NCBI GenBank assembly: GCA_002269645.1
Contig: NIVC01002455.1
Coordinates: 183,159 to 239,302, forward strand
Length of the DNA: 56,144 nucleotides
DNA from: Macrostomum lignano
Taxonomy: Eukaryota
Reading direction: 5' to 3'
The notes under the pieces were generated by a model. It saw only the letters and a list, made by a program, of their open reading frames with translations, was not told the origin of the DNA and ran no database searches. Position numbers and translations under genes: made by a program. Of this stretch, positions 13,105 to 56,144 are shown piece by piece; position 1 is the stretch's first letter, and each line of letters opens with the position of its first letter.

Positions 13105-14987
13105 GGCTTGCTGCTGTGGGAGCTTTGGGCTGAAACATGAGCATCTTGATGATTTAGCATTTATGCATCAATGAGTTCCAAATAGTACATGTATAAAAAT
13201 TAATTTTCATAGCTTCCATTATTTTTCATCAATACTATTTTATCCTTGTTTAACACATTGTTTAAAAGCAACCTAATGTATTTTAGACTACAAGCAGTTT
13301 TGAATCCCATACTTCGAAATTAGAAAGTGCTACAAGTTGTAAAGAAATTAATTTTGCTTAAGATCCTAAAAGGAAACATTAAAAAATTATCATCCAGACA
13401 TGTGAATAAAACAAAGATTTTTTAAAGAAATACAATATCTGTACTTAATTAAAATTTCAAATTATCCACTTGCTAGCAAGCCAACAGAAAGTTTTCTACA
13501 GATCTTTGAAATTAAATGACACAGCAAGGAAACTCATATTAATACCATTAAAATAGTTCTTTGGTATAAATTTTGAGTTGTTGCATAAATCTAACTTGTA
13601 AAATTTCAGAAATTTAGAGTATTAGACTAAAATGGACTTTAAAGAAGAAATTAAAAATAAATTAGCATTTCAATTTTTGTCTGATAGACTATTTTTCAAC
13701 TGCATCTTTATGAAGAGCAGCACAAAAAGAACCAGAACCACTGTTTCGCACTATTTTAGTAGTTGATTTGATTGATTTTAGTATTTTAAATTTCTTAGCC
13801 ACAATGCATGTACCGTCACGAAAAAAATTCTGATCGAAAAGTGCACGTTCGAAGAAAATCGGTTGAGCCATTTTTCTCTACTGATCACATAGATACCTAT
13901 CTACCGACAAATCATTTTTGGTATATGGAAATAGCTGGTCATTGTGAACGAGATTCTATATCGTTCTGCATTTATACTAAAAATTATATTTTTTGCTAAC
14001 AGCGAATTTAAAGTAAACACAGATATCAAGATTTAAACTCAAAGGACACACTGCTTTACGTATAATCTACATACCGTAAAATTATTGAATGCTCGTGTAC
14101 TTCTTTGTTGAAGGTGTTGCGATCAGCGATATATGCGAAAGATAGATAGTTACCAAATCAAAAAAATTTCGTTGCTAGTGTTAAATTTTGTATATTGGAC
14201 CTTAACAACACAAATATTAATTAAAATAAAAATGTGAGTCCTTTATTTGCTATAAAAATTGTTTAATTTGATTTATATTATTTAAAGGGCTTCACAACTG
14301 TGCGTGTGTTTAAATATAGAAGTAAAATTTGTTAAAACATTAGATTTGCGGAGTAAAATATGTCTTAATTCGCAAAACGGATAAACGAATTAAAAACTCA
14401 TAAATTATTATTTATCAGGGTTTATTACCATTATCAATAACACAAATAAATGTAAAAGGGTTGATTTTTTCTGTGCGAAACATCCTATTACTGTTCATGC
14501 ACTTCTCTATCAAGAGTACAGACAACCTAACATGAATAGATCAAATAGATTATTTGTGGATTATTATAAATGAAACAGTCCGGCTTATTTCATAAAAACC
14601 GAAGCTATATTTAAGAATTTTCTGGTGTGTTGCACATAAAATTGTTGGTAGAGATCTATTAACTTAAAATATTTGCTTTTAAAGCTTATTTCCAGGCTTT
14701 TTGCTTGTGTTGTTGTCATATCTGTACATGCAAATTTGTTTGGATATGGAATTTAATGTACTGTGCTTTAGTTTGTTGAGGAACTTTATGTCCACATCTA
14801 TGCCGAAAGTAGAGAATTTATGGAAACATAAATTACATGGACTCGTGTATTTAACTTGTTTTGAACTCTTGCTACACAGCTTGCTACACAGCTTTCGAAT
14901 TCCCGACTAAATTATAGAGATCGAAATTATCGAGTGTCCAACTTGGATCGATGCTCCACCCATCTACCACACTAGTCCAAAAACGCT

Positions 14988-15135
14988 TGACCAATGAGAG
15001 AGGTCGGAACACTCGGATCAAAACCCGTTCGCTATTTTGCTTCCAACTTTACTTTTCCTCTCTCTTCCCATTTCCCTTTTCCCCTTTCCCCTTTCTTTTC
15101 GCCGAACTTCTATAAAGCCTCAGCAGCGTCAGTGC
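14988..15135 (+). promoter_or_regulatory. Candidate core promoter of the acidic repeat gene
   Basis: CCAAT near 14990, pyrimidine tract, TATAAAG 15111-15117, TCAGT 15129-15133; the TATA-Inr spacing is shorter than canonical. Confidence 0.3.
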
Positions 15136-15232
15136 CCAGGTATCCCAACCCTGGTTGCTGTAGTTTTGGCTTGCAACCGAATTGGATCAGCTGAAACTAG
15201 TGCACAGAATTTGTCAGCGACATTTACCAAAA

Positions 15233-18200
15233 ATGGTGGCACCCAGGCAGCGAAGAGGACCGTCTTTGGTGGCTCCCTTGTGCCTCCTGTTTCTAGGTGA
15301 GGAAAAAACACACAAAGAGGCACTGTTTTAAGCCGTTTATTAATTAATTATTCGCACCATTTTTCATCACACATTCAACAAACAGGCATCGCTTTGGTTT
15401 GCTGCCTCGTTGAAGCAGCGGATGAGCAGGCGGCCTTGAATAATGTCGATTCAATACTGGTTAGTAAACCAAACATCCTTACTTCCCTCCTAAAGCCTCT
15501 TGTAGAGGCTCTCGTAAGTTATAAAAAATTATGTAATGCTTTAGTAAACATCGACCCTCGACGACAAAACTTAACTCTAAACTTCCCAACTCCAATAAAA
15601 TCATTTCTCTCCATCGTGATCGCGCAATAACTAAAAATTTGGACCACCAGCCCGAGATGACCCACCCTCACCACCACTGCAGTCTGGCGGACGGCGCCGC
15701 CTTCTGCAAGAGGCCGAAGAGGAAGAGGAGGAAGCGGAAGAGGAGGAGGAGGAGGAGGCACCGGCGGAGTCCTCCGATGAGGAGGCAGATGAAGAAGCTG
15801 CAGCAGTCGAAGATAATCCGGGTAAAAATAGATCGCAGGCTTAAATATTACAATTCACAAGACAGGTATTTACAAGTACATATACACTGTATGCTCACTA
15901 ATTTGAGTGGATTTGAGTTTCTTGATAAGCATTTCATCAGACCCACCTTCACCCACCATCAATCCATCATTTTTCTCGCCATTTATGTTGGTCATCCGAT
16001 CCATTGAACTCTAACACGGGTTACGTATTTGAGTTTGATTCCTTGGCTTTTTCTTTGAATGAGCCCTGTGCACCAGAGTCCCACTTACAACATTTTTCAT
16101 GCTCATTTTACTACGAGCGTATATCGGCTTCTGGGGAATCATAAAACTAATTGGGGCTCACTAATACGATTAACCATAACTTAATTTCAATTGCGACTTT
16201 GCTACACAAAATTAACAAAACGCCTGACAGAAAAGCTAGGAGAGTCGCTCCGACCCTCTATTAGCCCAAGTCAAATTCTTGCAAAACAACGCCACCACTA
16301 CCAATGAAGACTCTCACGAAACTGACGAGGAATCTGGAGACGATGGCGGTCGTCGCCGACGTCGACGAAAGGGCCGCGGTCCGCCGAAGCCGCCCAAAAT
16401 GCAAGTTGAAAACGAGGCCGCCGAACAGCCGATGGTGCTAAGCGAAGACCCGAACGACCACGACTGCGACGGCATCCCGGACGATCAGGACGATGACATC
16501 GACAACGACGGCCTGCTGGATCGGACGCAAGACTCCGACTGGGACGGCGAGACAAATCAAAATGACGACGATGACGACAACGACGGTATTCCGGATGTAG
16601 AGGACCCGGACGCTAACGGTGACGGCATCCCGGATTGCCGCGAGGACACATCGGACAATGAGAAGCGACTGCGGTACCGGAACCGCAAGAAGGAGGGTGA
16701 TGCGGACAATGATGGAATTCCGGACTATCTTGACTTGGACGACGATGGTGATGGCATTCCGGATGTTCTGGAGGACTCCGATGGAGACGGCATACCCGAT
16801 CTACTGGACACCAGCAAATACGATGCCACAGGTGAGTGCCGCAATGGTCTGATACTCTGGGAAGCTGTCACTTCAATACTTAGGAATTCTTCTTATTAAA
16901 ATTGCCAACAAAAAGCAGAAAAGATGTTTTCAGGTGCTCGTTTTCTCACTGCCCTTCCATTCTATGTTCAGATGGCCCTGAGGTTGAGGACCTTATCGCG
17001 GACCTCGAAGACATGGGTTGGTATGACCGTGACTGTGACGGCATCCCGGACTTCCTTGACCCGGATGACGACAATGATGGCTACCTGGACAATAAGCAGG
17101 ACAGCGACAACGACGGCGTCCTCAACGAATGGGACGATGACGACGACAACGATGGCATCCCAGATTGGGAGGACGAAGACTCTAACGGCGACGGTAAGCC
17201 CGAGTGCGTCATGGAAGACTCAGACGGCGACGGCATCCCAGACCACATTGACACTGATGATGACAACGATGGCATTCCTGACCTGAAGGATCCCAACCAT
17301 CGGCTGTACAATTTTTTTAAAGACTCCGATGGAGACGGCATTCCGGACTCTATTGACAACGACGATGACAACGACGGAATTCCAGGTAAACAATGAGTAG
17401 CAGCAACTTGCTATGAATGTCAGCAAGCAATATTTTTCAAGTCGGGAATTTCTGAAACGTTCATCCTTCCCTTACTTCAACACTTTTTGCCCTTGCACTC
17501 GGCACTGCTGTCTGGAGAGCCCGAACGCGTCACAATCAGCCAGCCCTCATAAGTCATCTACATGCAGCGCTTTCTAAATGAAGGGAGTATCGAAGGCAGA
17601 GTTAAGGTAGAAAATGAATGGAAGCAACGGGAGGACGGGAGGTATACGAAGGTCAGAAGCGGATGGAAGCAGCTGTCGAACTAGTTTAGAAGCCATGGGG
17701 TGGTGCTGCACAAGCAAGCAGCCATCCGGGAACAAACGCTCCCTTGCAGCTGCATTCGAAAGGTCGCGATGCTTACACTCTCTATCCCCTCCGCTGTACT
17801 TGCACCAGTGCATTTGGTTCCATATGCAGCCTTTCGCATATCGATCGAACACATCCAGCTTTCAGTCCCCAGGTCTGCGGCCATACGTCTTCCAAAAGCG
17901 ATCTTCAGAAATTTTCTCTCCAGTCTGATATTTATAACCCAGTTGTAAAACGAGCTTTACAATACGAGCTATATTCTACTTTTCCGAGTAGGCAGTCTGG
18001 AAAATTCTCAGACGCTGCAAATACTTAGAAAGTTTTTGAAGCTATTAAAAATAAATTTGGATATCCCTTTCTAATCTTCATGCAGACAACGTTGACGCAG
18101 ACTCGGACGGTGACGGACAGGCCGATCTTTTCCCCGACCGGGACGGGGATGGCATCCCGGATAGCATCGATGATGATATGAACAACGACGGCATACCCGA

Positions 18201-27200: not shown

Positions 27201-30200
27201 TATCTAGGCGTACTTTGCTCTTCTTTTGCATCCTCCAGGTGATCAACTTCGGTGAGCCAAATGTTTCGGCAGTTTAGATATCTACTAAAGCATCCGCTAA
27301 CCTCGAATTCCTTTCACAATGCAACGCAGCACTGCACGACGATGCTAATTCCAGATTATCTTGAGGGCGACTCGGACGGTGACGGAATTCTCGACTATCT
27401 GGAAGATAAGGACGGAGACGGCATCCCAGGTAGGCACTGGTCTGGTCCGATTATCTATTCCGAGGGTTGATCAAAAAGTTCTGCAACCTTTTGTTATAGC
27501 TTTTAGTTATAGAATCGGCAAAAGCCAAAAACTTACACATATGCGGCTATATCTCTTTGCTATATTTATATGCATTTTTGGCTTTCAAATGTGCTCCAGT
27601 CAAATTTCACAGCTGTATATTTTCCATGTGTTTTCAGTAGCTGATGGAAACATCAATAGACAGTGTTCGCTTCTATATCTTTATGCGCATGCAACTTGGT
27701 TGCAAAGTGACTGAGATTCATACCGATCTGGTGAATGTTTTAGCTGACTCTGCTCCATCATTTGACACGGTTGCCCGCTGGCTGCGCCATTTCTTGGAAC
27801 GCCGGGACAGCTTCAACGATGAACCGAGGTCTGGCCGACCCCGGACATCCGTGACCGAAGATGTCGTGGCCCATGCCGATGCAATATTTCGTGAGGATTG
27901 GAGCATTATGCTGAGATTCCTTGCCTATGAGCTTGGTGGGTACCCCATCTTCTCACTCCGGAGCAGCAAGCAGAGAGGGTGGACATCTGTCGCTTGTGGG
28001 TGCAAATGTTTGAGACCAACGGCCCACGACGACTGTCGGATGTCATCACAGGAGACGAATGTTGGATCTCCTTCTTTTACCATGAAGGATAAGCAGTCCA
28101 ACATGGTCTGGCTGGCAGAAGATGAGCCCGAGGCCCAAGTTGCTGCAGACCGGATTCCGCAGTCGGAAGCGGATATTCACCATTTTTTCAACTCTCAGGG
28201 TTTTGTATCGGTAAAAATCCTTCCAACGGGTGCCACAGTGACTGCCAGGTACTACACAGACATTGTTCTGCCAGGCGTGCTGCAGGAGCGGCATGGACCT
28301 CGACTCCTGCTGCACCATGACAATGCGGCACCCGAACAGAGCGGCCTCAACCATGGCGTACCTGGAGCAGCAGGGGGTCCGGCTGCTGCCCCATCTGTTG
28401 TGAGTGCGCGACCATACGTACTTAACTCTATGTTCAGTGTGGGGCACGTTGGTTTGCGAAACGCGTTACGCAATAATCTAACATCCAATTTTTCCCACAG
28501 CGTGCATGTTAATATATAAATACAGGCCGTGGTCCGGCGAGACTCACTAAGTTTTTTCTAGGAACCAAACCTACGCGTTCAATACATAACATTGGCGACG
28601 AAGATGGCAGACTTCAGTCTCAACCCACCAACGCCGTACCTGGCTAGCCCGGGCGAGCCAAGCTGCCCGTGGCCAAGGTGGAAAAGTCAGTTCGCGATCT
28701 ATTCAACGGCAACGGAACTGGACAAAACGTCGGAGGCGAGACAAATGGCCGTCCTTCGACACTGCCTCGGGCCGGAAGGCCAACGGCAGGCGGAAAGCGT
28801 GGAGGCGAACGACATGAAGAAGCTGATCGAAGAACTGGACAAAATTTTCGTGCCGAACAAGAGCGTCATCGGAGCTCGCTACAGGTTTCGGTGCAGGGAG
28901 TAGCGACCAGGGGAGCCGGTGCAGCAGTTTGTCAGAGATCTCCAGCAGCTCGCGGCCGATTGCGCGTTCAAGGACCTGACAAAGGAGATGGTCCGCGATC
29001 AGCTTATCGAAAAAACGTGCATGCCACGTATCCGTGAGAGGCTGCTGATGGAACAAGACGACCTGACACCGGAGAAGTCCCTGCAGCTCGCCAACCAAAT
29101 TGAGACAGCCATCAACGAAGCCCAGGTCCTCAACGGCACATCAGGGGCAGAAAGTCAGAAAGTCAGAACCAAGCCCAAAACGCGCAAGGACAGCGAGAAG
29201 TGCAGGCGATGCGGCGGCGACTACAGCAAGGAGCACAAGTGCCCAGCAATGGGGAAAATGTGCAACAACTGCAATAAGCCGAACCACTTTGCCGCTGTAT
29301 GCCGAAGCAAGACTGTGGCGACAGTCAGCGAGGAGGTTAGCACCATCCTGCAAGTCTCGAACCAGGATCCGACTGCCGCCCACACCATCGAATGCGCGGT
29401 CCGCGACGAGCTGCTGACGTTGACGCTGGACAGCGGTGCCTCCGTGTCGGTGATCAGCGCGTCCGAATTCCAGAAAGTTCGACGACACGCAACCAAGGGA
29501 AGCGGACCACCAGCACGGCACGTGGCCTACGGAGGCTCGCACATCCGGACCTATGGGACAGCAACGCTCCCGGTCATGTACAAGGACAAGACGGCCTCAG
29601 TCTGTTTCCAGATCACAGAGGGCAGCTCAAGCCTTCTTGGGCGCTCCGACTTCTCGAAGTTTGGTGTGTCTCTTCAAATTAACCATCTCGGTGACGAGGG
29701 CTCACAACTCCAGGACAACTCCAAGGACTTCTTCGAGCCGATCAGGCAACAGCCGAGCACGCCAGCAGGAGCCTGGCAGGAGCTGCAGCTCGACATCTGT
29801 GGAGAGTTCAGAGCGGCGCCGCGTCACCAGCGATCGCGGACCGCGGTCATCCAAGACGGCTCCTGGGTGTACATCTCCAAGCCGGTGGCACCTGGCAAGC
29901 TGGAGCCGAAGCTCGCCGGGCCGTTCCAGGTTCGCAAGCGATTCAAGACAACCGTGCTGCTCGAAAACGGCAAGCGGTGGCACCTGCGGCACTGCGTGCC
30001 AGCCGGACCTGGCAAAGGAAGCGACGATGACGGCGACGCGCAACTCGACGAAGGTGGCGGCGGCCCGGAGTTGGATCCGCCAGGACCGCCTGATGATCTC
30101 GCTGGGGACCCGCCAGCACCTCCGCCGGTACTGAGAAGGTCAGAGCGCGAGCGTCGCCCGCCAATGCGCTATCCGAACTGAACCGTGTATGATGCACTGA

Positions 30201-36172: not shown

Positions 36173-36885
36173 CATTCAATACAGTGTGGATCTCATGGAT
36201 CGGGCATTCAATACAGTGTGGATCTCATGGATCGGACATTCAATACAGTGTGGATCTCATGGATCGGGCATTCAATGCAGTGTGGATCTCATGGATCGGG
36301 CATTCAATACAGTGTGGATCTCATGGATCGGACATTCAATACAGTGTGGATCTCATGGATCGGGCATTCAATGCAGTGTGGATCTCATGGATCGGACATT
36401 CAATACAGTGTGGAGCTCAGTGAGATCATGGATCGAACATTCAATACAGTGTGGATCTCAGTGAGATCATGGATCGAACATTCAATACAGTGTGGAGCTC
36501 AGTGAGCTCATGGATCGGGCATTCAATACAGTGTGGATCTCAGTGAGATCATGGATCGAACATGCAATACAGTGTGGAGCTCAGTGAGCTCATGGATCGG
36601 GCATTCAATACAGTGTGGATCTCAGTGAGATCATGGATCGGGCATTCAATACAGTGTGGATCTCATGGATCGGACATTCAATACAGTGTCGATCTCAGTG
36701 AGATCATGGATCGGGCATTCAATACAGTGTGGATCTCATGGATCGGGCATTCAATACAGTGTGGATCTCATTGATCGGACATTCAATGCAGTGTGGATCT
36801 CATGGATCGGACATTCAATGCAGTGTGGATCTCATGGATCGGACATTCAATACAGTGTGGATCTCAGTGAGCTCATGGATCGGGC
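36173..36885. repeat. 32/41-bp minisatellite
   Basis: Unit CATTCAATACAGTGTGGATCTCATGGATCGGG; the 41-bp variant contains a 15-bp interrupted palindrome. Confidence 0.95.
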
Positions 36886-38215
36886 ATGCGAGCCGACTGG
36901 CAGATTTTTGCGAGAGTGCATGAAAAGTTTACAACTCTAAAAATTCATTGGCACTCTCATCTCTTCAACAGTCATAATTTGCTCAATATTTTTACCAGCA
37001 TAAATAAGCCATCAAATGAAGAAGCTGCCGGTTTGCGCACAGTATGATATATTAATATATTTGTACACAGGCTCAGCAGTACAGAGACTGGGAGAGACAA
37101 AGGGGCCAGTGGGGATCAACGATTTGCAGGCTAGCACAGTCTACAGTTGCAACTGATGCGGCCCGACCTCGAAACGAATCGGTTGCAGCAGCAGCAACTG
37201 CGCACTGTGGGAAAGTGAGGGGCTAGCATAGCATTGCTACCAGCCCATATGGCACTCGGCTGCGACTAAAAACAATTTCTGCTACTAGAAGAGACAGAGA
37301 GCGATAGAGAGGGTATGGAGAGAGGTGCGGCAAATGCAGGGCGCTCCGAGAACAGTTAGCTACAGCAGACAGCGGGTGCCCAGACGCTCGTAATTAGTTG
37401 TTAGGCGTTGCGCACTGCACAGACACTGCGCTGAGTAAATAAAACCTTCTTGACAGAGAGAGAGGGTGCGAAGAGAGGCAGCAGGGAGGCTGTGGGCCGG
37501 ACTGAACGAGCCGGTGGGCGGATTGCACTAATAGACTATTGAAAGGGAGATAGAGCAGAGATGAAGCAGAGAGGCTGAAGAGGTGTCGCTGGAGCAGCCG
37601 TATGGAGTCAGTCGTGTAATGAAAATAACATAAAGCTGCGCTAACCATGCATTGTCTGTGCATCAAAACTCCCTTCTCTACGTATACGGTATTCCGAGTT
37701 TAGAGCAGAGCTAGAGATTATTTAACCTAAGCAGGAAAGGCGAAGGACTGTTAAATTAGAACGACGCGGCACTTCTCAAATCTTGAAAGCGTTTTGAGTT
37801 AGGCAGGGCTTTCAAAGGTTAAGGCTAAGATGCAGTTGCTAGTGAGGACTCAGAAAGTGTTAATTAGGCTCACATGTTTGTCTAGCTTTATATACAGTTC
37901 GGAAAATATATACTTATTAACTTCCCAAGAGATCGCACGCCATTCTGTAGCCCTTAAACAGGACATCAATAGGATACAAAATTAAACAGTTCATTACAAG
38001 CAGTGCAGCGATTGTGACCAACACGAATCAGCATCCAGGCTCGTATGCGAGAGGTAGACACTCACAATGGGTTAAGATTAAAACAGATAATTGGCGCCAA
38101 CATCAAAAGAGGAGACAGTCGCGATAGAAGCTGTATGGATGGACTGTGCAGTGTCTTGGCCGGCTATAGTCAAAAGTTCAAGGCCTCCCTCCGCCAGCGA
38201 TGATTGAACCTCCCG

Positions 38216-39430
38216 TCAGGTCGATGACTCACCGATGACTGGCGAGGACTCTGGACTGGAGTGAACGTCGTCCAGAACGTTCACCGGGTTCGCTCGATTA
38301 GGTGGCAGCGGGTGCTGGAACTGGGGCTGGAACTGGAGCTGGTGCTGGTGCTGCAATGTCCTCAGCGGCAGCGGCCGGACCAGATGGCTTCGCTCGGATT
38401 CGGACGCGGACTCGGAGGGCGTCCGCGGATCCGAGGTTCCCGCAGAATTGTCCCGCGAGGTGCCACCGCCGCTGCCGCTGCCACCTTTGCCTGCGGCTGC
38501 GCCGAACAGTCTTTGGTCGGAGTGATCGCGGCCTGCAGTGGTGCGGGTGCGGGCGAAGGCGGAATAGGTCAGCTGGTACTGGCCCGTGCCGTCTTCCTCG
38601 TCGTCTGGCGCGTTGCCACCGCCATGACCCCCGGGTTGCTCCATGGAGCTGCTCTTCTGCAGTCGGCGCCGTCCACCGGGGATGGCTGTGATCATTGTTG
38701 AAGCCGGGTGCTGCTGTGGAACCGACGGGGGCGGTTGTGGTGGTGGCGGCGGCGGAGGATGATGTGGCGGGGGCGGAGGCTGCGTCTGGCGAAATCCGAA
38801 GGCTAACGACGTCGAAGTCGACGAAACCATGCCAGGCGGCTGTCGAACTGTTTGCCTTCCAGTTTGAAACAGGCAGGAGGCACTCTTGGCGAATTTCGAC
38901 GAGTGGTGCTGCTGACTTTGTTGCTGCTGTTGCTTTTGCTGCGGCTGCTGCTGCTGCTGCTGCTGATAAAGCATCTGACTGTGGTGCTGAAGCGCTGGGA
39001 AGCCGGCCAAAGCCGGGAAAGTGACAGAGCCCGGGATCGCTGGCTGGGGCCGGTCGCCAAAGTACAGCGAGTGCATGGAGTCGCGCACAGTGTATTTGTC
39101 CCACAGCAGCCGGCCATCTTCATCCAGAGCGTACACGGGGTGCTGCTGCGTCTGCTGGTGCAGCTGGTCCAAGCTGATGGTCTGGTGCGGGCCGCGGTGC
39201 TGACCGGCGGCCAGAGTCGGCTGCTGCGGAACAGGAGGCAACGGCGGCATCGTGTGCTGCGGCTGCTGCTGCTGCGGCTGCTGCTGCTGCTCCGCCGTCT
39301 GACTCCCGCGCCTGTCCTTGCAGAATGGCAGGCGAGCGGCAAGCCGGAACCAGCACAGCAGGAAAACGATGAAGGCAACGATAACCACGAGTGTGGGCAG
39401 CAGGACGCCGAGATAAAACAGCAGCTCCAT
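38216..39430 (-). CDS. Single-pass membrane protein with a long Q/P/S-rich disordered cytoplasmic tail (404-aa ORF; may be the last exon of a longer gene)
   Basis: Hydrophobic helix LLFYLGVLLPTLVVIVAFIVFLLCWF followed by basic residues; a strong splice acceptor lies 13 nt upstream of the ATG. Confidence 0.7.
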   Translation of the reverse strand: MELLFYLGVLLPTLVVIVAFIVFLLCWFRLAARLPFCKDRRGSQTAEQQQQPQQQQPQHTMPPLPPVPQQPTLAAGQHRGPHQTISLDQLHQQTQQHPVYALDEDGRLLWDKYTVRDSMHSLYFGDRPQPAIPGSVTFPALAGFPALQHHSQMLYQQQQQQQPQQKQQQQQSQQHHSSKFAKSASCLFQTGRQTVRQPPGMVSSTSTSLAFGFRQTQPPPPPHHPPPPPPPQPPPSVPQQHPASTMITAIPGGRRRLQKSSSMEQPGGHGGGNAPDDEEDGTGQYQLTYSAFARTRTTAGRDHSDQRLFGAAAGKGGSGSGGGTSRDNSAGTSDPRTPSESASESERSHLVRPLPLRTLQHQHQLQFQPQFQHPLPPNRANPVNVLDDVHSSPESSPVIGESST

Positions 39431-42400: not shown

Positions 42401-45027
42401 CTGCGCTTCCCTGATCCCCTGAACTCATTCTGCCCGGGAGCCAAATAGAGCTGCATCGTCTGTGCTCTCATCCACTTCTCGTTGTCGTTCGAGTCTCTCT
42501 GTCCTATCTTTATTCCCAGCATTGAAGGCAGCTGGCAAGTCTGGGAGGGAGGGGGAAGTGTGGGGATAAATTCCCCTGGCGCACGCGCGCTAGCACAAAA
42601 GCAAAGAGAAAGCGGGATTTGGGGGGCTGATTTCTGGGGGAGTGGAAAACTTTTGGGTAGGGGAAAACCGCAGCCGTCGGCAGCATCAGAATTCGCCCAT
42701 TTTCAAATCCTTCGATTTGCTTTCCTCCACTGTCGCCTCTCCCTCTCCTCCCCGATCCGCTCCATATGTTTTGCTAAGCCGTCTGGGGCCGCTGTGGAAC
42801 CCAATCTTTGTTACGTAATCTCTTTGTTTTGCGATCGCTGCTCGGCGGCGCTTTCGGCTTGAAGTTTTTTTTCCTCTCGCTGGGGCGCTGAGCAGAGAGC
42901 GGCAGGGAGCCCCGCTGGGACGCAGCTTTTGTCAGACCGGGCCGGGAGGATCCGTGCGATACGGGGGGGGGGGTTGTCTGGCGGACGGACAGAGAGAGAG
43001 AGTGTGCCGGGGCTAATAAAGTTTGAGTGCCTTTTAATAATGCACAAGTCATTGAGCTGGCTGGGGCTGGGACTCCGCCCTTGGCTAATTTGGCGCAAAA
43101 TTTCAGTCTGAGAACGCTGAGACCAGCCGGCGGGGAAGAGAAACGGTTTTATCCCAATCGAAATAATCCTCACAATCGTTTGGAATTATCTGGTAAGGCT
43201 GAGCAAAACCAGCCTTGAAGCCGCTAGCAGTATCTGCAAACGAAATGGAAAATTTCTGTCAATTCAAAGCACTGCATAGGATTTCTCAGTTCGGTTTGCC
43301 GACAGGGCCGCAGGTTTTCTTGGGAGGCTTTTTGCCAGGCGGCCGAGGTGTGCCCGCCAGGTGTTTGCTCTGCCGGGTCAGTCGGGAAGGGCCGAGTCTG
43401 CGTGCCCATCCATTTGCACTGGCTGTAAAGATTCCTGATATTGCCGCTGTTTGCGTAGCGGCCATTGTCAGATAGCCCCCCGTCATCATTCTTCTTCTTT
43501 CTGTCCTTCTGTCTGCGTTTCCCTGCCTGTACGCTCGCGCTTAGCTGATAAAAATTCGCTGCTTCAATGCAGAGAGCGGCGGTGCAATAAATTGAAGGCA
43601 GCCAGAGATATTAATCTACGAGGAGTGAAATTTGAGACTTGATTGACAGCTGGTCGCCGGGAGATGCAATTGGCAATTGTAATTGGCAGTCGTGAATTGT
43701 TTAAGCTCTGTGCAGCAGCACTCCTGCGACTTTGGCTGAATATTCCCACACGTGATGCTGCCGGCTCAATCTGAATCCAGGGACAACTTAAGAACACAAA
43801 ACTCGACGAATCCATGAGCTACAGGCAGTGACAGTGGAAGGACGTCTGGTAACTGTTAAAGTAGCAGTTATATGATTAAAGAGTTAATTAGTTAGATCAC
43901 GTTATTATTTATGAAAAATTAAAAGTCTACAACACAGATGATGATTTTAGCTGTTCGTATTCTTTCAACCAGGCGTGCCGGTCTCAAAACTTCCCAGCCG
44001 AATCAGAGGCTGGGGGCATTCATCACCACTGGGGAGTTTGAGGCCGGCTGGCTCCGTTCGAGCTCAATCAAAAACTTAATTTCCGTCTTGACAGGCTCGC
44101 TGGGAAATAGCTGGTTGGGGCTGCAGGAGTTGGGCCGGGGTCTGCTCCGTTCTTGGGGGTGGCGCCTCGATGCTGGTTGAGATTTCTTGTATCCATGGCC
44201 TGGTCGCCAAACGTCTGCCTCTGAGTCGGTCGATCAGTCATTTCCGTCTCACCCCCGGCCTGGCATATCGGAGCTTACGGAGAAGATGGGAGAGACGCGG
44301 CCAAGAGGACGGGGGACCTTGACAGATTTTCCAGTTCCCAGAAGCAGATGCCGCCAAGATTGGATGCTGGTTCTCTGCATGGCGGGTGATATTTTTTCGC
44401 TATCAACTCAGTGTAGACACCCAGAACCAGCCCAGCCTCCCGCGGGTGCTTACGCTCGAGTGTTCCATTGTGATTGCGTATCAGAAAAATCGAATCTCAT
44501 CTTCAGCTGAAAAACGCCGTCTTCTCAGCCAGGCGTGGAGCAAATCTCTGACGGCAAGTCGCTAGCCAAGGACAGACTGCTTTGATTTACGCTCTGCTTA
44601 CTGAGCATTGTCGAACTCAGCTCCAAGTACATTAGTCTAGATTTATTGTTTGTTGCCTGTCGTCAGCTGTATTAGGTTAACCTCGAGCCTGCTCAACTAT
44701 CTCAAGCGGCCTCATGTTATGCTTGCTCTTGGGGGTAATTTGATAGGTTTGTGTGGATGTATCCATCTTTTCTGCGCATATTTGCCATTCAATATTTTGT
44801 CAAGTACTATTAGTGCAAAATGTTTAGATGCACACACAAGTTTATAGTTGGAGCTGCTGACAAGATTAAATGGGGACATCCGCTTGTCGCAGCTAGCAGA
44901 TATTAAAGACTTCCGGTGCACGGTGGCTCTAGCTTTGAAACATCGGAGCAGTGACCAGGCGCTAAAAGGTAGGTGAGAGGGCTACAGCAAATACTCGTAG
45001 CCTAACTCGAGATTTTAAAAACAAACC

Positions 45028-45053
45028 GGAAGTGCTGCTGTTATAAATATTCA
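45028..45053 (+). promoter_or_regulatory. TATA-containing promoter block of microprotein A
   Basis: GGAAGTGCTGCTGTTATAAATATTCA; 25/26 identical to 47778-47803. Confidence 0.6.
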
Positions 45054-45115
45054 TCCGCGCATCGACTTGTAACAAGCTTGGTAATCGTAAGGCTAAGGCA
45101 GAGCGCAACCAAGTC

Positions 45116-45337
45116 ATGTCAAGCACTGAAGACGCTGAAAAAATCAGAGTATGGATCTACGCGGTTTGGGGATCGGTCCTTCTGACCGGGTGGATCTGCA
45201 TCCTGTGCGCCTACTGCTGCTGCTGCCAGGAGACCTGCCGGCCGCAGATGGGGTCTAACCTGTTCGGCCGGGCCAGCAGCCAGGAGTACAGCCGGATCGG
45301 CTCGGGCGGCGGCTTCCGAAATGACAACAAAGTTTAG
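45116..45337 (+). CDS. Single-pass Cys-cluster microprotein A (73 aa)
   Basis: TM helix, then ILCAYCCCCQETCRPQMGSNLFGR, tail YSRI; paralogous to three neighbours. Confidence 0.75.
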   Translation: MSSTEDAEKIRVWIYAVWGSVLLTGWICILCAYCCCCQETCRPQMGSNLFGRASSQEYSRIGSGGGFRNDNKV

Positions 45338-45706
45338 ACGATATTCAAGTGCTCAAGAACTGTGATTTTACAAGTATTGTATATCAGCCTAACTGTCATC
45401 CCCTGAGAACAGCTTAGAACAAAAATCATTGCTGTACCTACGTATTAATACGATGGATATGCAGACAGTTACAGTTTTATAAAGTACGAATAATACATTA
45501 ATCTATCTCCAAATATATATTCACAGAGAGAAGTGAATCAATTGATGGTGTTTTATTTTAAATTCTGTTTTAAGTTCAGACTGAGCTTATAGCTACCATA
45601 TCTGTAAGGCTAACTGCTCTAAAATGAATCTTTTTTGCGTGAAATTTTTTCCCTAAATATTTCCTAGCCCATAATTTACCATCATTGACTTCAGAATTCA
45701 CTTTCG

Positions 45707-46176
45707 TTGGGTTACCATCCAGTTCCCATCGGGTTTATCATCCAGTCCCCATCGGGTTTATCATCCAGTTCCCATTGGGTTTACCATCCAGTTCCCATTG
45801 GGTTTACCATCCAGTTCCCATTGGGTTACCATCCAGTTCCCATTGGGTTTATCATCCAGTTCCCATTGGGTTTATCATCCAGTTCCCATTGGGTTACCAT
45901 CCAGTTCCCATTGGGTTTATCATCCAGTTCCCATTGGGTTTATCATCCAGTTCCCATTGGGTTACCATCCAGTTCCCATTGGGTTTATCATCCAGTTCCC
46001 ATTGGGTTACCATCCAGTTCCCATTGAGTTTATCATCCAGTTCCCATTGGGTTACCATCCAGTTCCCATTGGGTTACCATCCAGTTCCCATTGAGTTTAT
46101 CATCCAGTTCCCATTGGGTTTATCATCCAGTTCCCATTGGGTTACCATCCAGTTCCCATTGGGTTTATCATCCAGT
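45707..46176. repeat. 22/23-bp minisatellite (CATCCAGTTCCCATTGGGTT(T)A(T/C))
   Basis: Read directly; one more unit follows the SINE at 46441-46467. Confidence 0.95.
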
Positions 46177-46432
46177 TGTAGCCTTGTGGACTCACGACTG
46201 AAAGACACTGAAAGGGCTCAAGACACTTAAATCTGCATTGCTTCAGTTCACCCAGCTGTAAAATTGGTGCCAGCATTAGCTGGGGTAACTGAGGGTGTGT
46301 GGCGACCCCCCAGTCCTTGGACTGAACAGCCGTACGCAGCCTTCAGATGCGCCGCACAATAGCTGCGGCTGAGCTGTCGGTTGCACATTGCCCATTAGGG
46401 CAGGTGTAATCAATTATTATTATTATTATTAC
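46175..46432 (+). mobile_element. Second copy of the CORE-like SINE, head rearranged, inserted near the end of a minisatellite
   Basis: Shares CTGCATTGCTTCAGTTCA.CCAGCTGTAAAAT.GGTGCCAGCATTAGCTGGG ... GCTGCGGCTGAGCTGTCGGTTGCAC ... CAGGTGTAATCAATTAT with 11068-11349; (ATT)n tail. Confidence 0.8.
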
Positions 46433-46815
46433 TATCATTAGGTTACTATCCAGTTCCCATTGGGTTTAATCATAATTTTCATAGAGCTCGAGAGAATCCT
46501 TCCGCACTGTGTTCTCGACAGCGGGGAGGCAATGTCGAATACACTAAAAACCATTGTGAATGATCGAACGCTAATTTCACGCTTATGCCAACAAGCTTGG
46601 AGACTTTTTCCTAGTAAACTGATAATCTTTTTCCTAAAAGCTCTTCAGGCGGATCTGGAGTTCGCTATAAACTTTATCAAACTAGTAAGCAAAAGAAAAC
46701 CGCGGCATCCCTACCGTATAAATCACCGGCTCCGCTGGTAACAGCGACCAGAGCCTTATAAGTCCCCAAGTTAGCTGGACTCAGAAGACTAATTCGGAGA
46801 ATTCGGTGAGCAAGC

Positions 46816-47109
46816 ATGGGAGGCACGACCCCTACGGATGCACAGTACAGCGAACAAGTCATATACATCAGAAACTGGGTGCCCGGCATCTTTCTGGCCA
46901 TCAAACTGGTGGCCAGCATCGGCATTCTGTGCGCCTACTACTGCTGCTGCCAGCAGCAGTGCCGGGCTCAGATGGGCTCAAAGCTGTTCGGCCAGAGACC
47001 AAAGAGCTGGTTGCCACAGAAGAACAACCAAAGCAGCCGCCTGGGAGCTACAGGCCATTGGGAAACAGCACTGATGCCATGGTTTAGTGACTGTCGACCA
47101 GTGCTTTGA
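46816..47109 (+). CDS. Single-pass Cys-cluster microprotein B (97 aa; tail possibly frameshifted)
   Basis: IGILCAYYCCCQQQCRAQMGSKLFG core preceded by a hydrophobic segment. Confidence 0.65.
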   Translation: MGGTTPTDAQYSEQVIYIRNWVPGIFLAIKLVASIGILCAYYCCCQQQCRAQMGSKLFGQRPKSWLPQKNNQSSRLGATGHWETALMPWFSDCRPVL

Positions 47110-47777
47110 TTAGTTTTTGTTAAAATTTTGTATTGTACTTATCAAACAATGTGTTAAAATATGTATTGTGCAGTAAAATTACACGAATATTCCCAAGCTC
47201 ATTGAGCGCATTAGATATTAATTTATGATTTTGTGTATGAAACGTGGCTGCTGTGCTGCATGCTGCAAAAGTACAGGACATTCCCGTTCCTTAATCTCAG
47301 TTACTCTTCATTTTGAGATAATATTAACTATGATAACACTGTGAATTTATCGCAGTATTTGCAGTCGCTACAGTGGCTCCTATCAGTTCTCCAACAGCTA
47401 AGAACTGAACATCTTCAGTACACAGTGGCGCTCGCTCCCACACTATTAACAAAAATTTTTTGCAACACTCGCTGCGACACATTTGCTGCGGTCATCCAGG
47501 CGCAATGCCTTCCACGACATCGGCCCACTTTCGAGACCTGAGCCTGATGCTGTCTATATGGTTCAAGTTATCGTTAAACAAATTGTCACCTATCACTTGT
47601 CGGTTCGTCCCATTGTTGTTGTTGTTGTTTTAATGGGCCCTGCTAGAAATCTCGTGCGTCAGTTGTTGTTGCCATGGAAGCACTCGTGATTGGAATGCCA
47701 GTGATGCCAGGTCATATTAGGTAAGCGAAGGCGTTATAACCCAATTTGTCAAAACTTTGATGATATAAACATTAACA

Positions 47778-47803
47778 GGAAGTGCTGCTTTTATAAATAT
47801 TCA
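47778..47803 (+). promoter_or_regulatory. TATA-containing promoter block of microprotein C
   Basis: GGAAGTGCTGCTTTTATAAATATTCA. Confidence 0.6.
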
Positions 47804-47881
47804 CTGTCGAATGCGCTCAGGTCTGCCCGTTGACTTAGAAAACTCTGGTAAACGTAACATTACGCTGAGCGCAACGAAGCC

Positions 47882-48196
47882 ATGTCAAGCAGAGAAGAAA
47901 TTGAAACAATCAGATTATGGATCAACCTGACCTACGGATCGATCATGATGATCGGATGGATCTGCATCCTGTGCGCCTACTACTGCTGCTGCAAGGAGAC
48001 CTGCCGGCCGCAGATGGGGTCCAACCTGTTCGGCCGGGGAGCTCAGGCGGTGGAGCAAGGTGGCAACGTCACTACCGGACCAGCTGAGACTGTTATCGTC
48101 ATCAGGCAGGAGGATGAGCCTCATGTGCTGCTGCAGCCGCCTCAGATGCAGCCGCAGTCTGAGCCCGCCCCGCCCGAGTACACAGAGAAGATCTGA
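47882..48196 (+). CDS. Single-pass Cys-cluster microprotein C (104 aa) with C-terminal PPEY
   Basis: WICILCAYYCCCKETCRPQMGSNLFGR core; AATAAA near 48318. Confidence 0.78.
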   Translation: MSSREEIETIRLWINLTYGSIMMIGWICILCAYYCCCKETCRPQMGSNLFGRGAQAVEQGGNVTTGPAETVIVIRQEDEPHVLLQPPQMQPQSEPAPPEYTEKI

Positions 48197-48794
48197 TGCC
48201 CGAAGTTACGAGCGTAACACAAAGATTTACATCAACCAATAGTTAGACTTATTTTTAAAAGTACATATACTTTTACACATACACGATAATTACTAATTTT
48301 GTGACTGCTCGATTATGAATAAATGTATAATTGCCTTCCGCAATAGCCATAGTCAAAGTAAATATTATTCATTGCCAATTCTCAGTGTTTTACATAAAAT
48401 TTTGGAACGCAATACAAACAGCACGTGAAGTCTTTTTCAGAAGACTTTTTAAGTAAAACATAATGGGTTGAACTGAGCTATCGTCTGAGCCGCTGGCTAA
48501 ATAAACTCGGCTTGGTATTACATCGAGGCGACATCCGCTTCGGGGCCAGAGGTATTGTACGCACACTGTACTGCAGACTTCCATTGCACGCTGCTTCGTG
48601 AGCTGCTTTGTGAGAAGTCACATGGACAGATAAGGAGCGTTCCACCTCAGTAAAGCAGGGCGGAGTGCGCTGTACGCGATAAGAGCGGGGGTTTATAATT
48701 TCTGTGCTTGAATAAATTAAGCGAGCAGAGGACCGACTGAGCTGGGCTTCAATCTCCGCACACTAGCGTATCCTGAGCCCTCAATACCGAAGCC

Positions 48795-49169
48795 ATGTCT
48801 TACAACAGCTATGCAGACACGTACGTGCTCGTGTACTGGGTTATTGTCGCCGTGGTTGTGATCGTCATCCCGCTGATTGGCGGCATCGGCATCCTGTGCG
48901 CCTACTACTGCTGCTGCCGCGAGGCCTGCCGTCCGCAGCTCGGCTCCAACCTGTTCGGCCGGAGTCCGCAGGCCGCCGCGGCCAGGGCTGTGCAGAATCC
49001 CAACCATGCTGGCCCACATGCTCAGGTGTTTGTCACGCAGCAGTACCCGCAGCAGTACCCGCAGCAGTACCCACAGCAGTACCCGCAGCAGTACCCACAG
49101 CAGTACCCGCAGCAGTACCCGCAGCAGTACCTGCAACAGCCACCGCCTCCAGAGTACTCTGAGAAGTGA
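48795..49169 (+). CDS. Single-pass Cys-cluster microprotein D (124 aa) with (QQYP)n and C-terminal PPPPEY
   Basis: IGILCAYYCCCREACRPQLGSNLFGR core; long hydrophobic N-terminal helix. Confidence 0.78.
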   Translation: MSYNSYADTYVLVYWVIVAVVVIVIPLIGGIGILCAYYCCCREACRPQLGSNLFGRSPQAAAARAVQNPNHAGPHAQVFVTQQYPQQYPQQYPQQYPQQYPQQYPQQYPQQYLQQPPPPEYSEK

Positions 49170-51247
49170 GCCAAGCACGCGGAGGAGGTGCGCCTTGTCA
49201 TCGAGAGTTTTTACAAAATTTGACTGTAGTTAATCTCGGTATAATTTGATGCCTCTATAAATAACTATTCATCATTCAATCGATTCAAAATGAACAGTAC
49301 TTATTGTAAAATTGATGTGCGCCTCGATTCTATTAATCACAGTAAGCTTTGCGGTATCGCCCTGTGAATTTTTGCTCCCAATTATCTTTGCCTTTAACTA
49401 CTTGAATTACATTAACTACTCGTATTAAGCTAACGATGATTCAGCATGGCCTTCGGTCTGACTTGATATCGTTACCTGACCAGTGCGGCCAGTATAGAAC
49501 TGACTTTAGCAAAAGTGAGAGGCGCGGAGAGGGCGAAGCCCACGAGAGGAGAGAGAGGGGGGCGGAAACGGCGCAGCAGGGTTTCTGTGCTTTCTGGGCC
49601 AAGATTTTCGAGCAGCAAAAGCCAATGTTCGCAAACTGTTTCCAAATGCTGCAATGGTCGTGGGGTGCCTTTTTGCGCAGATTGTCCGAGCCAGGCCTGC
49701 ATGATTTATGCATTCACCTCCAGCGCACTTGTGTTATGGAACTGCACACTCTGCACTGAAAGTAAAACGCGAAGCTTTTCTAGTTGATAGACCTGTCTGA
49801 AATGTTTTAGTCTTCACTTGCAGCTGGACTGCACCTGCTATTTATAAAACAAATTTGCTGTTAGCCAACTGTGTTCTGATTAGGCAAGGATGTTAGTATA
49901 TTTATTCCGAAGCAAACAGAAGACATTTGATCTCTAGCCGGTAGGGTGAATCCAAAGTACAACAAAACGTTGAAAGATTTGCAGTTTGTTTATTGGGCTG
50001 AACAGATGTTCCTCCGCGACACTCGGCCAATCCTAATTAGCGTCCTTGTGGCTAAAATTTTGACTGGTTGAAACCCCAAAATAGGAGCTATGAATTTGGT
50101 TGCAGCGGCAGCAACTGGAATGGGGGGGCGCAATGAACCCCTCGACTCCTTTGACGTCTTGACTTGTTTACTTCGAGATCTGCGATATCAATTCTTTTTA
50201 GCAATGTTTTCAATTTGCCAAATAGCATATGAAGCCAGTATGGGGGTTAGAGCTCACTCATTAGCAGCTTGGTTATTAGCAGCTCGTTAATGCTAAAATC
50301 TGCTTACTCAATAAGCAAACGAATGAGCAGTCCCTCAGGCTCAGACTCACTGATTATGCAATTGACAGGCCGCTGCACTGCCGAACAATGGGCGTATCAA
50401 ATGTCAGGCCGTGGAGGCGCAGGTGGGGAGAGGAGTCGGAGAGAAATACGAATGACAGCTCTTGTCTCCGCTAAGGTTGAAGGATGACAATCGAATGACT
50501 GACAGTTGAAGAGCTCGAGGCTGTTGAATGGTGGGGGGCATAAATTCATACCCGACACCAACAGCGGCAGCAGAACAGGTTAAATAATAAATTCTAAACA
50601 TTCTCAAGCATTGACTGACTGACTCGATCGAAGCTGGGCATTGCAACTGGCCATAAAATGACGAGTAGAAAATCTGTTTATCAGCGAATACGCGTGACCG
50701 AGGCTCACGTAGCAATAATATCAAATATTCATTTGGCACTCGAGAAGCCCCCCCCCCCGGGCCAGTGGAGTCGCGTTGCCGAAGGCAGGCGGAGGACCTC
50801 ATCTACGGGATCCCCCGCGGCGCTGGCGCCTACTCATTTCTCTCTGCCAGGCCCAACTCAAGCACCTTCTCAATGCAGTGCGCTTCACCTCCAGCCACAC
50901 AGCAACTGCGTTTGTCCCTGTGGGAAGGTGAGAAGCGGCAAAAATTAATTAACGCCGACCTGTCCCAGGTGAGACGGAGAGGCTGTTGCCTCGGGAATGA
51001 GGCAGAAATGAGGGACTCCGCGACGTGCAGTTGAGAGCATGCCCAGCCTCGCTTTGCCTCTACACCTCAGCTGCTTCTGGGAATTTCCTCTGGAGAGGGT
51101 CCGCGCGCCCGTGGTCGGTCAGTCGCTGCCGCCTCATTGACACGCCCTGCTTCATCTGCGCTCTTCACCGTCCATTGAATATTCTTTCTTTATCTGCTAT
51201 ATTGTGTCAGGCCATCTTGGAAGGGTTTTAGGGCTCTGCCAGAAAAG

Positions 51248-53225: not shown

Positions 53226-53297
53226 AGGTCCCACCGAGACTCGAACTCGGGTCGCTGGATTCAGAGTCCAGAGTGCTAACCGCTACACCATGGGACC
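53226..53297 (-). tRNA. tRNA-Gln(CTG): tRNA-Gln, anticodon CTG, intronless
   Basis: GGTCCCATGGTGTAGCGGTTAGCACTCTGGACTCTGAATCCAGCGACCCGAGTTCGAGTCTCGGTGGGACCT: 7-bp acceptor stem, anticodon arm CTGGA-CTCTGAA-TCCAG, T-loop GTTCGAG. Confidence 0.97.
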
Positions 53298-54388: not shown

Positions 54389-56144
54389 TTACAACAGGCG
54401 GCAGGTGGCAGTCTGAGGCGCCTTCCGAAACTGCAAACCGTTGGCAGCTCCGGCCTGCTGTCGGTGGCCCGGATCAGCTGACTCGGGTGGCGGCGTCCCG
54501 GTCTCGTCTTTCTCGAACACCGGGTCGCTCAGCCGGTGCCGGCCTTCGCTAGGGGCGGCTCCGTTTGCCACCTTGACGGCGCCGGAGGAAGCCGCTGCGC
54601 TGGCCGAGCCTGACGCTTTGCCAGCGAAGGGGTTCGGGGTGGCCGCTTTCAGCGTGCGCTTGGCGTGGCCCAGCAGGAAGTAGGTGCTCATAAGCCCCTT
54701 GCCTTTGATGTTGATCTCGCCGCGACCTTCAAACTTGTAGCCCTTGTCGGCGCACTTCTCGGTTAAAACTCTGGAGGGAGATTTCGGAAGATTTCGGAGT
54801 TATAGTAGAAATGTATTTCTTTCACGACGCAGAATACACTCTCTACTTTCTCACTTGTAGGTGGTCGGGCTGACGTGAATTCGACTGGGCACCCCGTGGC
54901 TCTCCATGCGCGAGGCCACGTTAACGGTGTCACCGAACAAGCAGAAGCGGGGCATCTTGTCGCCAACGACTCCGGCCACTGTGGGTCCGGTGTGCATGCC
55001 CACTCGGATCTGGGGTAGAATTGGTTTGGTGAATGAAAATCGTTATTTTTCTGATAGAAGCTGATAGTATTAACCTCTCTTTTACCTGAAGCGGCAGGTT
55101 AGTGACTGGCGAAGCCACCCGACAGGAGGCCTCGATCATGTCCATGGCCTGCTCACTGACAAAGTGCGCGTGCTGGTCTGTGCGCTCCGGAACTCCGCCA
55201 ACCACCATGTACGCGTCGCCGATCGTCTCCACCTTGTAGACCTTGTTGACCTCCGTGGCCTTGTCGAACAGCGAGTACAGGTTGTTCAGCATGTCCACAA
55301 TGTTCATGGGCGTGCACTGGCTGGCGATGTCCGTGAAGGTGACAATGTCCGAGAACAGGATCGTGCAGATCTCGTATTTCTCTGCGGATGTGAGAATTGC
55401 ACCTCCCGAGGCGGCGGTCCAACAGAAAGGAGAAACACTTGGAATGTCGCGTGTTCGCTCACCGGCTGCGACCCGCTTTCCCTCCAGCAACTGCTTGGCA
55501 ACCTTTGAAGGCAGCATCTGGGACAGCAGCGTGTGCGTCTTCTTCTTCTCGTCCTCCAGCTCCGCAGTCATCTTCTTCATCTCATTCGTCATCTCATCCA
55601 TGTGCTTGCTGATCTCAATCTCTGCCAGGCGTTGCTGGTTCACCTGAGAGGGCGGGGGCGCGGCGGTCAAGGGGCAAAGGGTGGAGTCCGGATGCTGCCA
55701 CCACAGTGAAGATGATAGGCTATAGGTTCGTTCACACCGCTATCAAAACAGGCCAACTGTTGCATGATGACATGGCTTATGCAACTTTTTGTGGCTTTTT
55801 ATTTGTACATTAGTCATGACATTCGACGGCTCAATTTGATACCGGTCTGAGCGAACCTTAACTTCGGTAAACTACAGCATGAAATCCCTTGGACCCACCT
55901 GCAGCAATTCGCGGGTCACGTCGTAGAGCGGCAGGTCGGACATGAAAATATTCTTCTCCATCATTTCGCTCAGCGTCATCACGCGAGGTGAGCAGACGAA
56001 TAGAAAAAGGTTTGTGTCCTCCATGAATATCATCTGGCCTAAAGTTCAATAGTGAGCTGCGTAAGGTTCGATTCAAATGTAGCAGCTGGTAAAAACTTCA
56101 TCACCTTTGACGAGTAAAGAGCTCTGCAAAAACTCATCACTTGT
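54389..56144 (-). CDS. GUCY1B2: Soluble guanylate cyclase, beta-2-like; 3' part only (HNOBA/PAS, coiled coil, catalytic domain, CaaX); 5' end outside window
   Basis: Exons >56144-56105, 56038-55899, 55643-55463, 55381-55086, 55009-54855, 54770-54389, phases consistent. Motifs [79 protein letters not shown]; ends CRLL. Confidence 0.88.

Follow-up and report, generated by a model that had tools for sequence, protein, structure and literature searches.

A tandem family of predicted single-pass microproteins with a shared juxtamembrane cysteine motif in the flatworm Macrostomum lignano

Short transmembrane proteins with PY motifs that govern the surface abundance of other proteins have been treated as one group, which includes Rcr1 and Rcr2, Drosophila Commissureless (Comm), vertebrate PRRG4, and CYYR1 (PMC5578492; PMC7401822). 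The PY motifs of the yeast paralogues Rcr1 and Rcr2 (PPSY and VPEY) bind the Nedd4-family ligase Rsp5, and the two proteins are sorted to different compartments (PMC5578492; PMC7401822). Comm and PRRG4 are short and lack a classical signal peptide; one Cys is conserved where their helix nears the cytosol, and they bind Nedd4 through PY motifs and re-route the surface receptor Robo (PMC5578492). WBP1L, a single-pass adaptor shown by experiment to be palmitoylated, controls CXCR4 levels through [L/P]PxY motifs that bind NEDD4-family ligases and activate them (PMC6991692). The Shisa-like (STMC6) proteins, namely, Shisa, WBP1, WBP1L, VOPP1, CYYR1, and TMEM92, are defined by a C*C*CC*CC cysteine domain on the lumenal side, in most cases preceded by a signal peptide (PMC5578492, PMC6991692). 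Here, we describe a tandem array of four open reading frames (ORFs; A to D) on the plus strand of Macrostomum lignano contig NIVC01002455.1, at positions 45116-49169 of a 56,144-nucleotide stretch of DNA (the window), that encode small proteins with one predicted transmembrane helix. Judged by sequence and by analogy, their architecture is that of the known functional class of short PY-motif membrane adaptors (for C and D at least) and lies outside every named family with which we compared it.

The original prediction, made from the letters of the window and a list of its ORFs, proposed four same-strand microproteins of 73 to 124 aa with a short N terminus and one transmembrane helix, and the ORF listing and hydropathy returned the same coordinates, lengths, and single helix. 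Its shared core, ILCAY[YC]CCCx[EQ]xCR[PA]Q[ML]GS[NK]LFG[RQ], fits all four proteins as written, and motif and repeat scans agreed with the tails that it had listed: YSRI in A (residues 58-61), PPEY in C (residues 97-100), and (QQYP)n plus PPPPEY in D (PPEY at residues 118-121), where the repeat is encoded by a 12-bp tandem repeat of 8.7 copies. An alignment of the four proteins has 20 invariant columns, mostly in I-x-ILCAY-x-CCC-xxx-CR-x-Q-x-GS-x-LFG. When each protein was searched against the whole window with tblastn, the other three were recovered (expect [E] values of 1e-24 to 0.15, depending on the query pair), with no fifth family copy. The similarity among the four proteins is thus far beyond chance. 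The DNA of the cores is 81-87% identical across 76-100 nt, the flanking coding sequence is unalignable, and similarity between paralogues ends with the core block. A and C are the exception, with 77.5% identity from about position -100 to the end of the core (45016-45272 versus 47764-48038); because their identity runs from about 100 nt upstream through the core, they are the most recent duplicates. They have promoter, 5' untranslated region, helix, and core in common and unrelated tails. C and D both end in PPEY[TS]EK, and the 40-60 residues that precede this ending are unalignable. The four proteins are true paralogues and make up a family of single-pass microproteins. Three of the genes are credible, and the fourth is doubtful: the proposed count of four holds for A, C, and D and is weakened for B, in which a PY motif is missing and one allele carries an internal deletion.

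Each protein has one hydrophobic segment and no second one (best 19-residue Kyte-Doolittle window, 1.83-3.09). The hydrophobic span, some 25 residues long, runs from an invariant Trp as far as the Cys cluster (helix at about residues 12-37) and follows a Cys-free N-terminal stub of 11-19 aa (4 aa for D by the hydropathy cutoff), so that all Cys lie in or after the helix. An AlphaFold2 model of C, built on a five-sequence alignment, has one helix at residues 3-37 (predicted local distance difference test score [pLDDT] of >90 for residues 11-30; mean, 60), and the rest is disordered, the conserved CRPQMGSNLFGR segment included. As modeled, the layout is that of a signal anchor and not of a cleavable signal peptide. 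The N-terminal flank has a net charge of -1 or 0, and the 15-residue C-terminal flank has a net charge of +1 or +2. Because of this charge difference and the lack of a cleavable signal peptide, we favor a predicted type III topology, with the N terminus outside or lumenal and the C terminus cytosolic; in this orientation, the cytosol would hold the Cys cluster along with the invariant and tail motifs. The CCC(C) cluster falls at the predicted cytosolic boundary of the helix, a position that fits S-acylation. The defining module of the family is the cytosol-proximal helix end together with the juxtamembrane segment ILCAYYCCC-xEx-CRPQMGSNLFGR, and the tails that follow it are disordered and differ between members.

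We compared this architecture with those of the named families. WBP1L/OPAL1 and the Shisa-like proteins are alike in being small and single-pass, with a disordered cytosolic tail that carries [L/P]PxY (here in C and D only, on a tail predicted to be cytosolic). The original prediction had set the array apart from Shisa-like, CYYR1, WBP1, and NDFIP proteins by its lack of their ectodomain or extra helices, which is borne out by the short stub and single helix. Membership in Shisa-like/STMC6 was rejected, as the flatworm stubs lack the Cys domain and no protein had a meaningful Pfam-A match at an E value of ≤10. Pfam-A holds models for the Shisa, WBP-1, CYYR1, and Rcr families. Closest in overall architecture are yeast Rcr1 and Rcr2, with a short N terminus, one helix, and a PY-bearing cytosolic tail, but they lack a juxtamembrane Cys cluster and a CRPQMGSNLFGR-like motif. 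Given the absence of a Pfam match at an E value of ≤10, we regard this as resemblance and not homology, and since Rcr proteins are fungal and show no sequence similarity to the array, any likeness is convergent. Comm and PRRG4 differ in needing an extended GLPSY[DE][EQ]A[LV] motif and in having longer lumenal parts (a Gla domain in PRRG); a [PL]PxY scan found PPEY in C and D only and no LPxY, and with no Pfam match, membership was rejected here too. So was membership in NDFIP1/2, which have three transmembrane helices versus one hydrophobic segment and one modeled helix here and a PY motif in the N-terminal region versus C-terminal here.

Two further groups resemble the array in layout. CYSTM proteins are tiny, with a Cys-dense helix and a Pro/Gln/Tyr-rich cytosolic region, and some have PPxY; their helix is a C-terminal tail anchor, whereas that of the flatworm proteins is N-terminal, and in the absence of a Pfam match at an E value of ≤10, we rejected membership. 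The leukocyte palmitoylated adaptors LAT, PAG, NTAL, and LIME combine a minimal ectodomain and a single helix with juxtamembrane Cys as a palmitoylation motif, and their long disordered tail consists of short linear motifs. This architecture is like that of the array, but the leukocyte motifs are phosphotyrosine motifs for SH2 proteins and not PPxY, and there is no sequence relation; to our knowledge, this type of adaptor is restricted to vertebrates.

Database searches returned only M. lignano's own entries. In Pfam-A (hmmscan, E value of ≤10), A, B, and C had no match, and D had only spurious matches to helices or low-complexity sequence; at the same threshold, NCBIfam gave only noise, and a profile search against PDB sequences matched nothing but generic helices (PsbJ and CALHM1). 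When 5.8e9 proteins were queried by word index with the full alignment and with that of the core, only 62 candidates had any 5-mer in common with the core, and two M. lignano entries (PAA83760.1 and PAA83761.1) were the sole matches. The same two entries were the only ones recovered by an exhaustive HMMER profile search of 1.84e9 cluster representatives, a database of a size at which the 64-position profile needs about 45 bits for significance. The annotated D protein is absent from the protein collection searched. DNA-level scans with back-translated patterns covered viral and JGI metagenome contigs and gave 78 and 268 pattern matches, 0 of which were confirmed by tblastn. These searches agree with the claim that the family has no named relative, and the best current reading is that it is sequence-novel and restricted to Macrostomum, as far as the searched data reach. 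Functional data would be needed for the family to surprise a specialist, because lineage-restricted small membrane proteins without an assigned function are common in animal genomes.

The array is present on two further contigs of assembly GCA_002269645.1, NIVC01003112.1 (99.8% identity) and NIVC01000406.1 (~97.5%); to NIVC01002455.1 itself, the window is 100% identical across the 6 kb compared (window 44000-50000). Such redundancy is to be expected: according to the assembly paper, non-repetitive blocks with ≥95% identity add up to 180 Mb, owing to extra large chromosomes in the sequenced line (PMC5730564). The GenBank annotation rests solely on transcripts obtained from RNA-seq (StringTie/TACO assemblies and a de novo transcriptome), which were cut using trans-splicing and poly(A) data, with ORFs found via TransDecoder (PMC5730564). 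Over the three contigs, this annotation calls C every time, D twice, A once, and B never; on NIVC01002455.1, C alone is called, and D is called (124 aa) on both sister contigs. A protein identical to A lies within PAA83761.1 (BOX15_Mlig011417g1, partial; NIVC01000406.1), and the exact C protein is in NCBI/UniRef from two contigs, along with a 95% identical copy (PAA83760.1 / A0A267GCK8; BOX15_Mlig003630g4); both A and C are deposited as hypothetical. The claim that the family is undescribed and missed by annotation therefore stands in part only: A, C, and D had already been called or deposited as hypothetical, but only C is called on the contig studied here and B is never called. The uneven annotation of tandem microprotein genes between duplicated contigs of one assembly is a practical reminder for users of such gene sets. 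The coding sequences are uninterrupted, and because the annotated gene range equals the length of the coding sequence (CDS) where a gene is annotated, the coding regions of A, C, and D are intronless. A full-text search and the supplements of M. lignano transcriptomic papers yielded no expression information on the locus tags.

Composition and promoter elements also suggest that these ORFs are genes. The GC content at third codon positions (GC3) of the four ORFs is 0.68-0.81 (0.78 for A), close to that of two references in the window (0.78 for a guanylate cyclase exon and 0.74 for a 404-aa neighbor gene), and the DNA between the ORFs has a GC content of 0.32-0.46. Every ATG has a TATA-like box 59-101 nt upstream, and TTATAA is invariant across the four aligned upstream regions. 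A and C have homologous promoter elements, in which GGAAGTGCTGCT, with an ETS-like GGAA core, is common to both and lies directly 5' of TATAAATA. The partial gene model of A begins 13 codons 5' of the ATG, at window position 45077, which is 35 nt downstream of the start of the TATA box, as expected of a TATA-driven start site. A canonical candidate poly(A) signal is present for C alone; the hexamers that follow A, B, and D, 63-141 nt past their stop codons, are all variants. On the basis of GC3, the TATA boxes, and the RNA-seq-derived gene models, A, C, and D are genuine transcribed genes; the suspicion that the ORFs might be untranscribed does not apply to these three, whose models come from an RNA-seq-only annotation. 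The array has been shown to consist of tandem, independently promoted, intronless, transcribed genes.

Several other features lie within or beside the array. A 23-bp satellite (TTGGGTTTATCATCCAGTTCCCA, 20.8 copies; units of 45 or 68 bp fit as well) occupies positions 45707-46177 between A and B; its length varies among the contig copies, and spurious long ORFs arise in it on both strands. A 153-aa antisense ORF over D (48717-49178, minus strand; LLRVLLRV repeats) is a by-product of the 12-bp coding repeat and not a gene. On NIVC01000406.1, about 3.8 kb of extra sequence lies just 3' of D relative to window positions 49218-49327 (13879-17678 in the stretch compared), and tblastn found no further family member in it. 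Upstream, a 404-aa minus-strand ORF (38216-39430), called as a gene on all three contig copies, has a very short N terminus, one helix (MELLFYLGVLLPTLVVIVAFIVFLLCWF), a long Gln/Pro-rich tail, and no Pfam domain. We considered it as a distant family member and rejected it: its SLYFGDRPQ is faintly like SKLFGQRPK, but the hhalign probability was 8.6%.

B is the outlier of the four. It has Lys and Pro in its helix, the motif CRAQMGSKLFGQ in place of the common one, no PY or YxxPhi motif, and no gene model on any of the three contigs. Moreover, its copy on NIVC01000406.1 has lost 198 bp in frame (window 46862-47059), so that only 31 aa remain and both helix and core are gone. We regard B as probably dispensable or in decay.

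Evidence on constraint came from comparing the window with NIVC01000406.1. Between these contig copies, noncoding divergence is 1.7%, and the coding sequence has 12 changes in 912 nt. A and D each differ from their copies by 2 synonymous and 0 nonsynonymous changes, and the D protein is identical in all three contig copies. C differs by 2 synonymous and 6 nonsynonymous nucleotide changes (5 residues), all 6 of the latter falling in codons 4-12 of the N-terminal stub (27 nt, 47891-47917), where there is no synonymous change. With the C patch set aside, a post hoc choice, the tally for A, D, and codons 13-104 of C comes to 6 synonymous versus 0 nonsynonymous changes. Under neutrality such a tally would be unlikely, at about 0.25^6 were one change in four synonymous. 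Gene conversion from A as a simple cause of this patch is unsupported, as 3 of the 6 variant sites match A in one copy and 2 match it in the other. Between paralogues, the Nei-Gojobori ratio of nonsynonymous to synonymous substitution rates (dN/dS) is 0.33-0.56 in the 24-codon core and 0.6-1.2 in the wider 41-codon block that takes in the N-terminal half of the helix (small counts in both). At the C termini of C and D, both Pro codons of PPEY differ synonymously (ccg/cct and ccc/cca), and because of these differences and the unalignable residues before them, PPEY[TS]EK is an independent sign of constraint.

Our leading interpretation, to which we assign a probability of roughly 0.35 from sequence and analogy, casts A, C, and D as S-acylated membrane proteins of type III whose juxtamembrane segment docks a partner, with the PPEY of C and D recruiting Nedd4-family ligases. 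The 3-4 cysteines at the cytosolic membrane boundary would be S-acylated, and the invariant CRPQMGSNLFGR segment would be held against the inner leaflet, where a putative partner could dock. The disordered tail would carry the sorting information: in A, this would be at most a YxxPhi signal, and in C and D, PPEY would recruit WW-domain HECT ligases of the Nedd4 family, so that the protein and the cargo that it holds would be ubiquitinated and sorted, as with WBP1L, Rcr1, and Comm/PRRG4. If correct, these proteins would be among the smallest PY-motif membrane adaptors known and would represent a lineage-specific reinvention of the WBP1L/Rcr1/Comm logic with a new juxtamembrane motif. M. lignano is tractable for transgenesis and RNA interference, and the idea is therefore directly testable.

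Several points weigh against this adaptor interpretation. Palmitoylation, topology, and WW-domain binding are each predicted, and the argument for an adaptor role is one of motif logic throughout. PPxY is present in only two of the four members, and the element conserved family-wide is the juxtamembrane motif and not the PY motif; because of this distribution, ubiquitin-ligase adaptor cannot be the common function of the whole family. The YSRI of A is a four-residue pattern that could easily have arisen by chance, and PPxY could serve the protein's own turnover only. When the N-terminal patch of C is counted, the contig copies differ by 6 synonymous and 6 nonsynonymous changes, which is borderline evidence for constraint. 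Across the 41-codon block, which includes the N-terminal half of the helix, dN/dS is as high as 0.6-1.2. With no detectable relatives, comparative support comes from one genome only.

The main alternative, only a little less likely than the adaptor interpretation, is that these are instead regulatory micropeptides whose helix end and juxtamembrane motif bind and modulate a specific membrane partner (a channel, transporter, or receptor, in the way of FXYD, KCNE, or phospholamban-type peptides), with PPEY and the tails setting only their own trafficking or half-life, so that they would not act as ligase adaptors for other substrates. What keeps this explanation strong is that invariance across the whole family is limited to the helix end and CRPQMGSNLFGR, with nucleotide identity between paralogues confined to that helix-end/juxtamembrane block; furthermore, A has no PY motif and yet is identical between contig copies, with synonymous changes only. 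However, the N-terminal half of the helix, which would contribute to a helix-helix interface, is near neutral in the 41-codon block, and the PPEY[TS]EK ending conserved in C and D suggests a ligand of WW domains.

A more ambitious version of the adaptor idea is unlikely. It holds that the family was born in Macrostomum, that the S-acylated CCC-xEx-CRPQMGSNLFGR would be a new docking motif for one common partner, and that swapped tails would set that partner's fate, with PPEY in C and D leading to Nedd4 ubiquitination and YxxPhi in A leading to adaptor protein (AP)-dependent endocytosis. Such an array would be a compact, recently evolved "plug-in" sorting system.

We see only a slim chance that the proteins are Cys-rich membrane protectants against stress, metals, or redox damage, which, like CYSTM proteins, would buffer metals or oxidants at the membrane. 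Their 5-7 Cys clustered at the membrane boundary and the Q/Y/P-rich repeat in the tail of D would suit that role, but the helix has the reverse orientation (N-terminal), no Pfam CYSTM match was found at an E value of ≤10, and the P/Q/Y-rich composition is found in D only and partly in C. The chance is slimmer still that these are young lineage-specific ORFs of little or no function, with incidental transcripts and a conservation that reflects recent duplication and gene conversion. This would account for the absence of homologues outside M. lignano, for the loss of the entire core that B tolerates, for the high dN/dS outside the 24-codon core, and for a coding divergence (12 changes/912 nt) close to the noncoding 1.7%. 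It fits poorly with a GC3 as high as that of conserved genes, with four frames that stay open despite tails diverged past alignment, with the 6 synonymous and 0 nonsynonymous changes outside one patch, with a PPEY kept through synonymous codon differences, and with a TATA box for each gene. Least credible of all is that they are secreted Cys-rich peptides: a hydrophobic segment near the N terminus followed by cysteines might be read as a cleaved signal peptide, but a span of about 25 residues after an acidic stub of 11-19 aa is not the layout of one, the model has one continuous helix at residues 3-37, the most conserved residues lie at the end of the hydrophobic span, unlike in signal peptides, and what was released would be disordered and left with at most one Cys past the cluster.

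Positions of the four ORFs and of their promoter, core, and candidate poly(A) elements in the window
Feature	Position	Strand	Description	Basis
A promoter elements	45026..45049	+	CCGGAAGTGCTGCT (ETS-like GGAA core), then TATAAATA at 45042-45049, 74 nt 5' of ATG	
Gene A	45116..45337	+	73 aa; YSRI tail (nt 45287-45298), without PPxY	ORF
24-codon core, A	45200..45271	+	ILCAYCCCCQETCRPQMGSNLFGR	Alignments
B TATA-like box	46757..46762	+	TATAAG, 59 nt 5' of ATG; second TATAAA at 46717	
Gene B	46816..47109	+	97 aa, divergent member; motif CRAQMGSKLFGQ, Lys within helix, without PPxY or YxxPhi	ORF
24-codon core, B	46924..46995	+		Alignments
C promoter elements, homologous to those of A	47776..47799	+	CAGGAAGTGCTGCT plus TATAAATA (47792-47799), 90 nt 5' of ATG	
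Gene C	47882..48196	+	104 aa; C-terminal PPEYTEKI (PPEY nt 48170-48181)	ORF
24-codon core, C	47966..48037	+		Alignments
C candidate poly(A) signal	48318..48323	+	Canonical AATAAA, 122 nt past stop codon	
D TATA-like box	48694..48699	+	TATAAT, 101 nt 5' of ATG	
Gene D	48795..49169	+	124 aa; (QQYP)n repeat (nt 49036-49139), C-terminal PPPPEYSEK (PPEY nt 49146-49157)	ORF
24-codon core, D	48891..48962	+		Alignments

Elsewhere in the window, an ORF at 27644-28519 (plus strand) has mariner/Tc1-type transposase remnants (HTH_32, HTH_48, and a partial Transposase_1), all below Pfam gathering scores, and is probably a decayed transposon. At 36173-36887, about 1.3 kb beyond the 3' end of the 404-aa gene on the minus strand, the sequence can be aligned to a sister contig in many offset registers (steps of about 32 bp, 80-95% identity), indicating a tandem repeat array. 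A tRNA-Gln gene (anticodon CTG; Rfam, 65.6 bits, and ARAGORN) lies at 53226-53297 (minus strand). The large exon at 54930-55670 (minus strand), used here as a reference for codon usage, encodes HNOBA and guanylate cyclase catalytic domains (E value, 1.5e-28) and belongs to a soluble guanylate cyclase gene.

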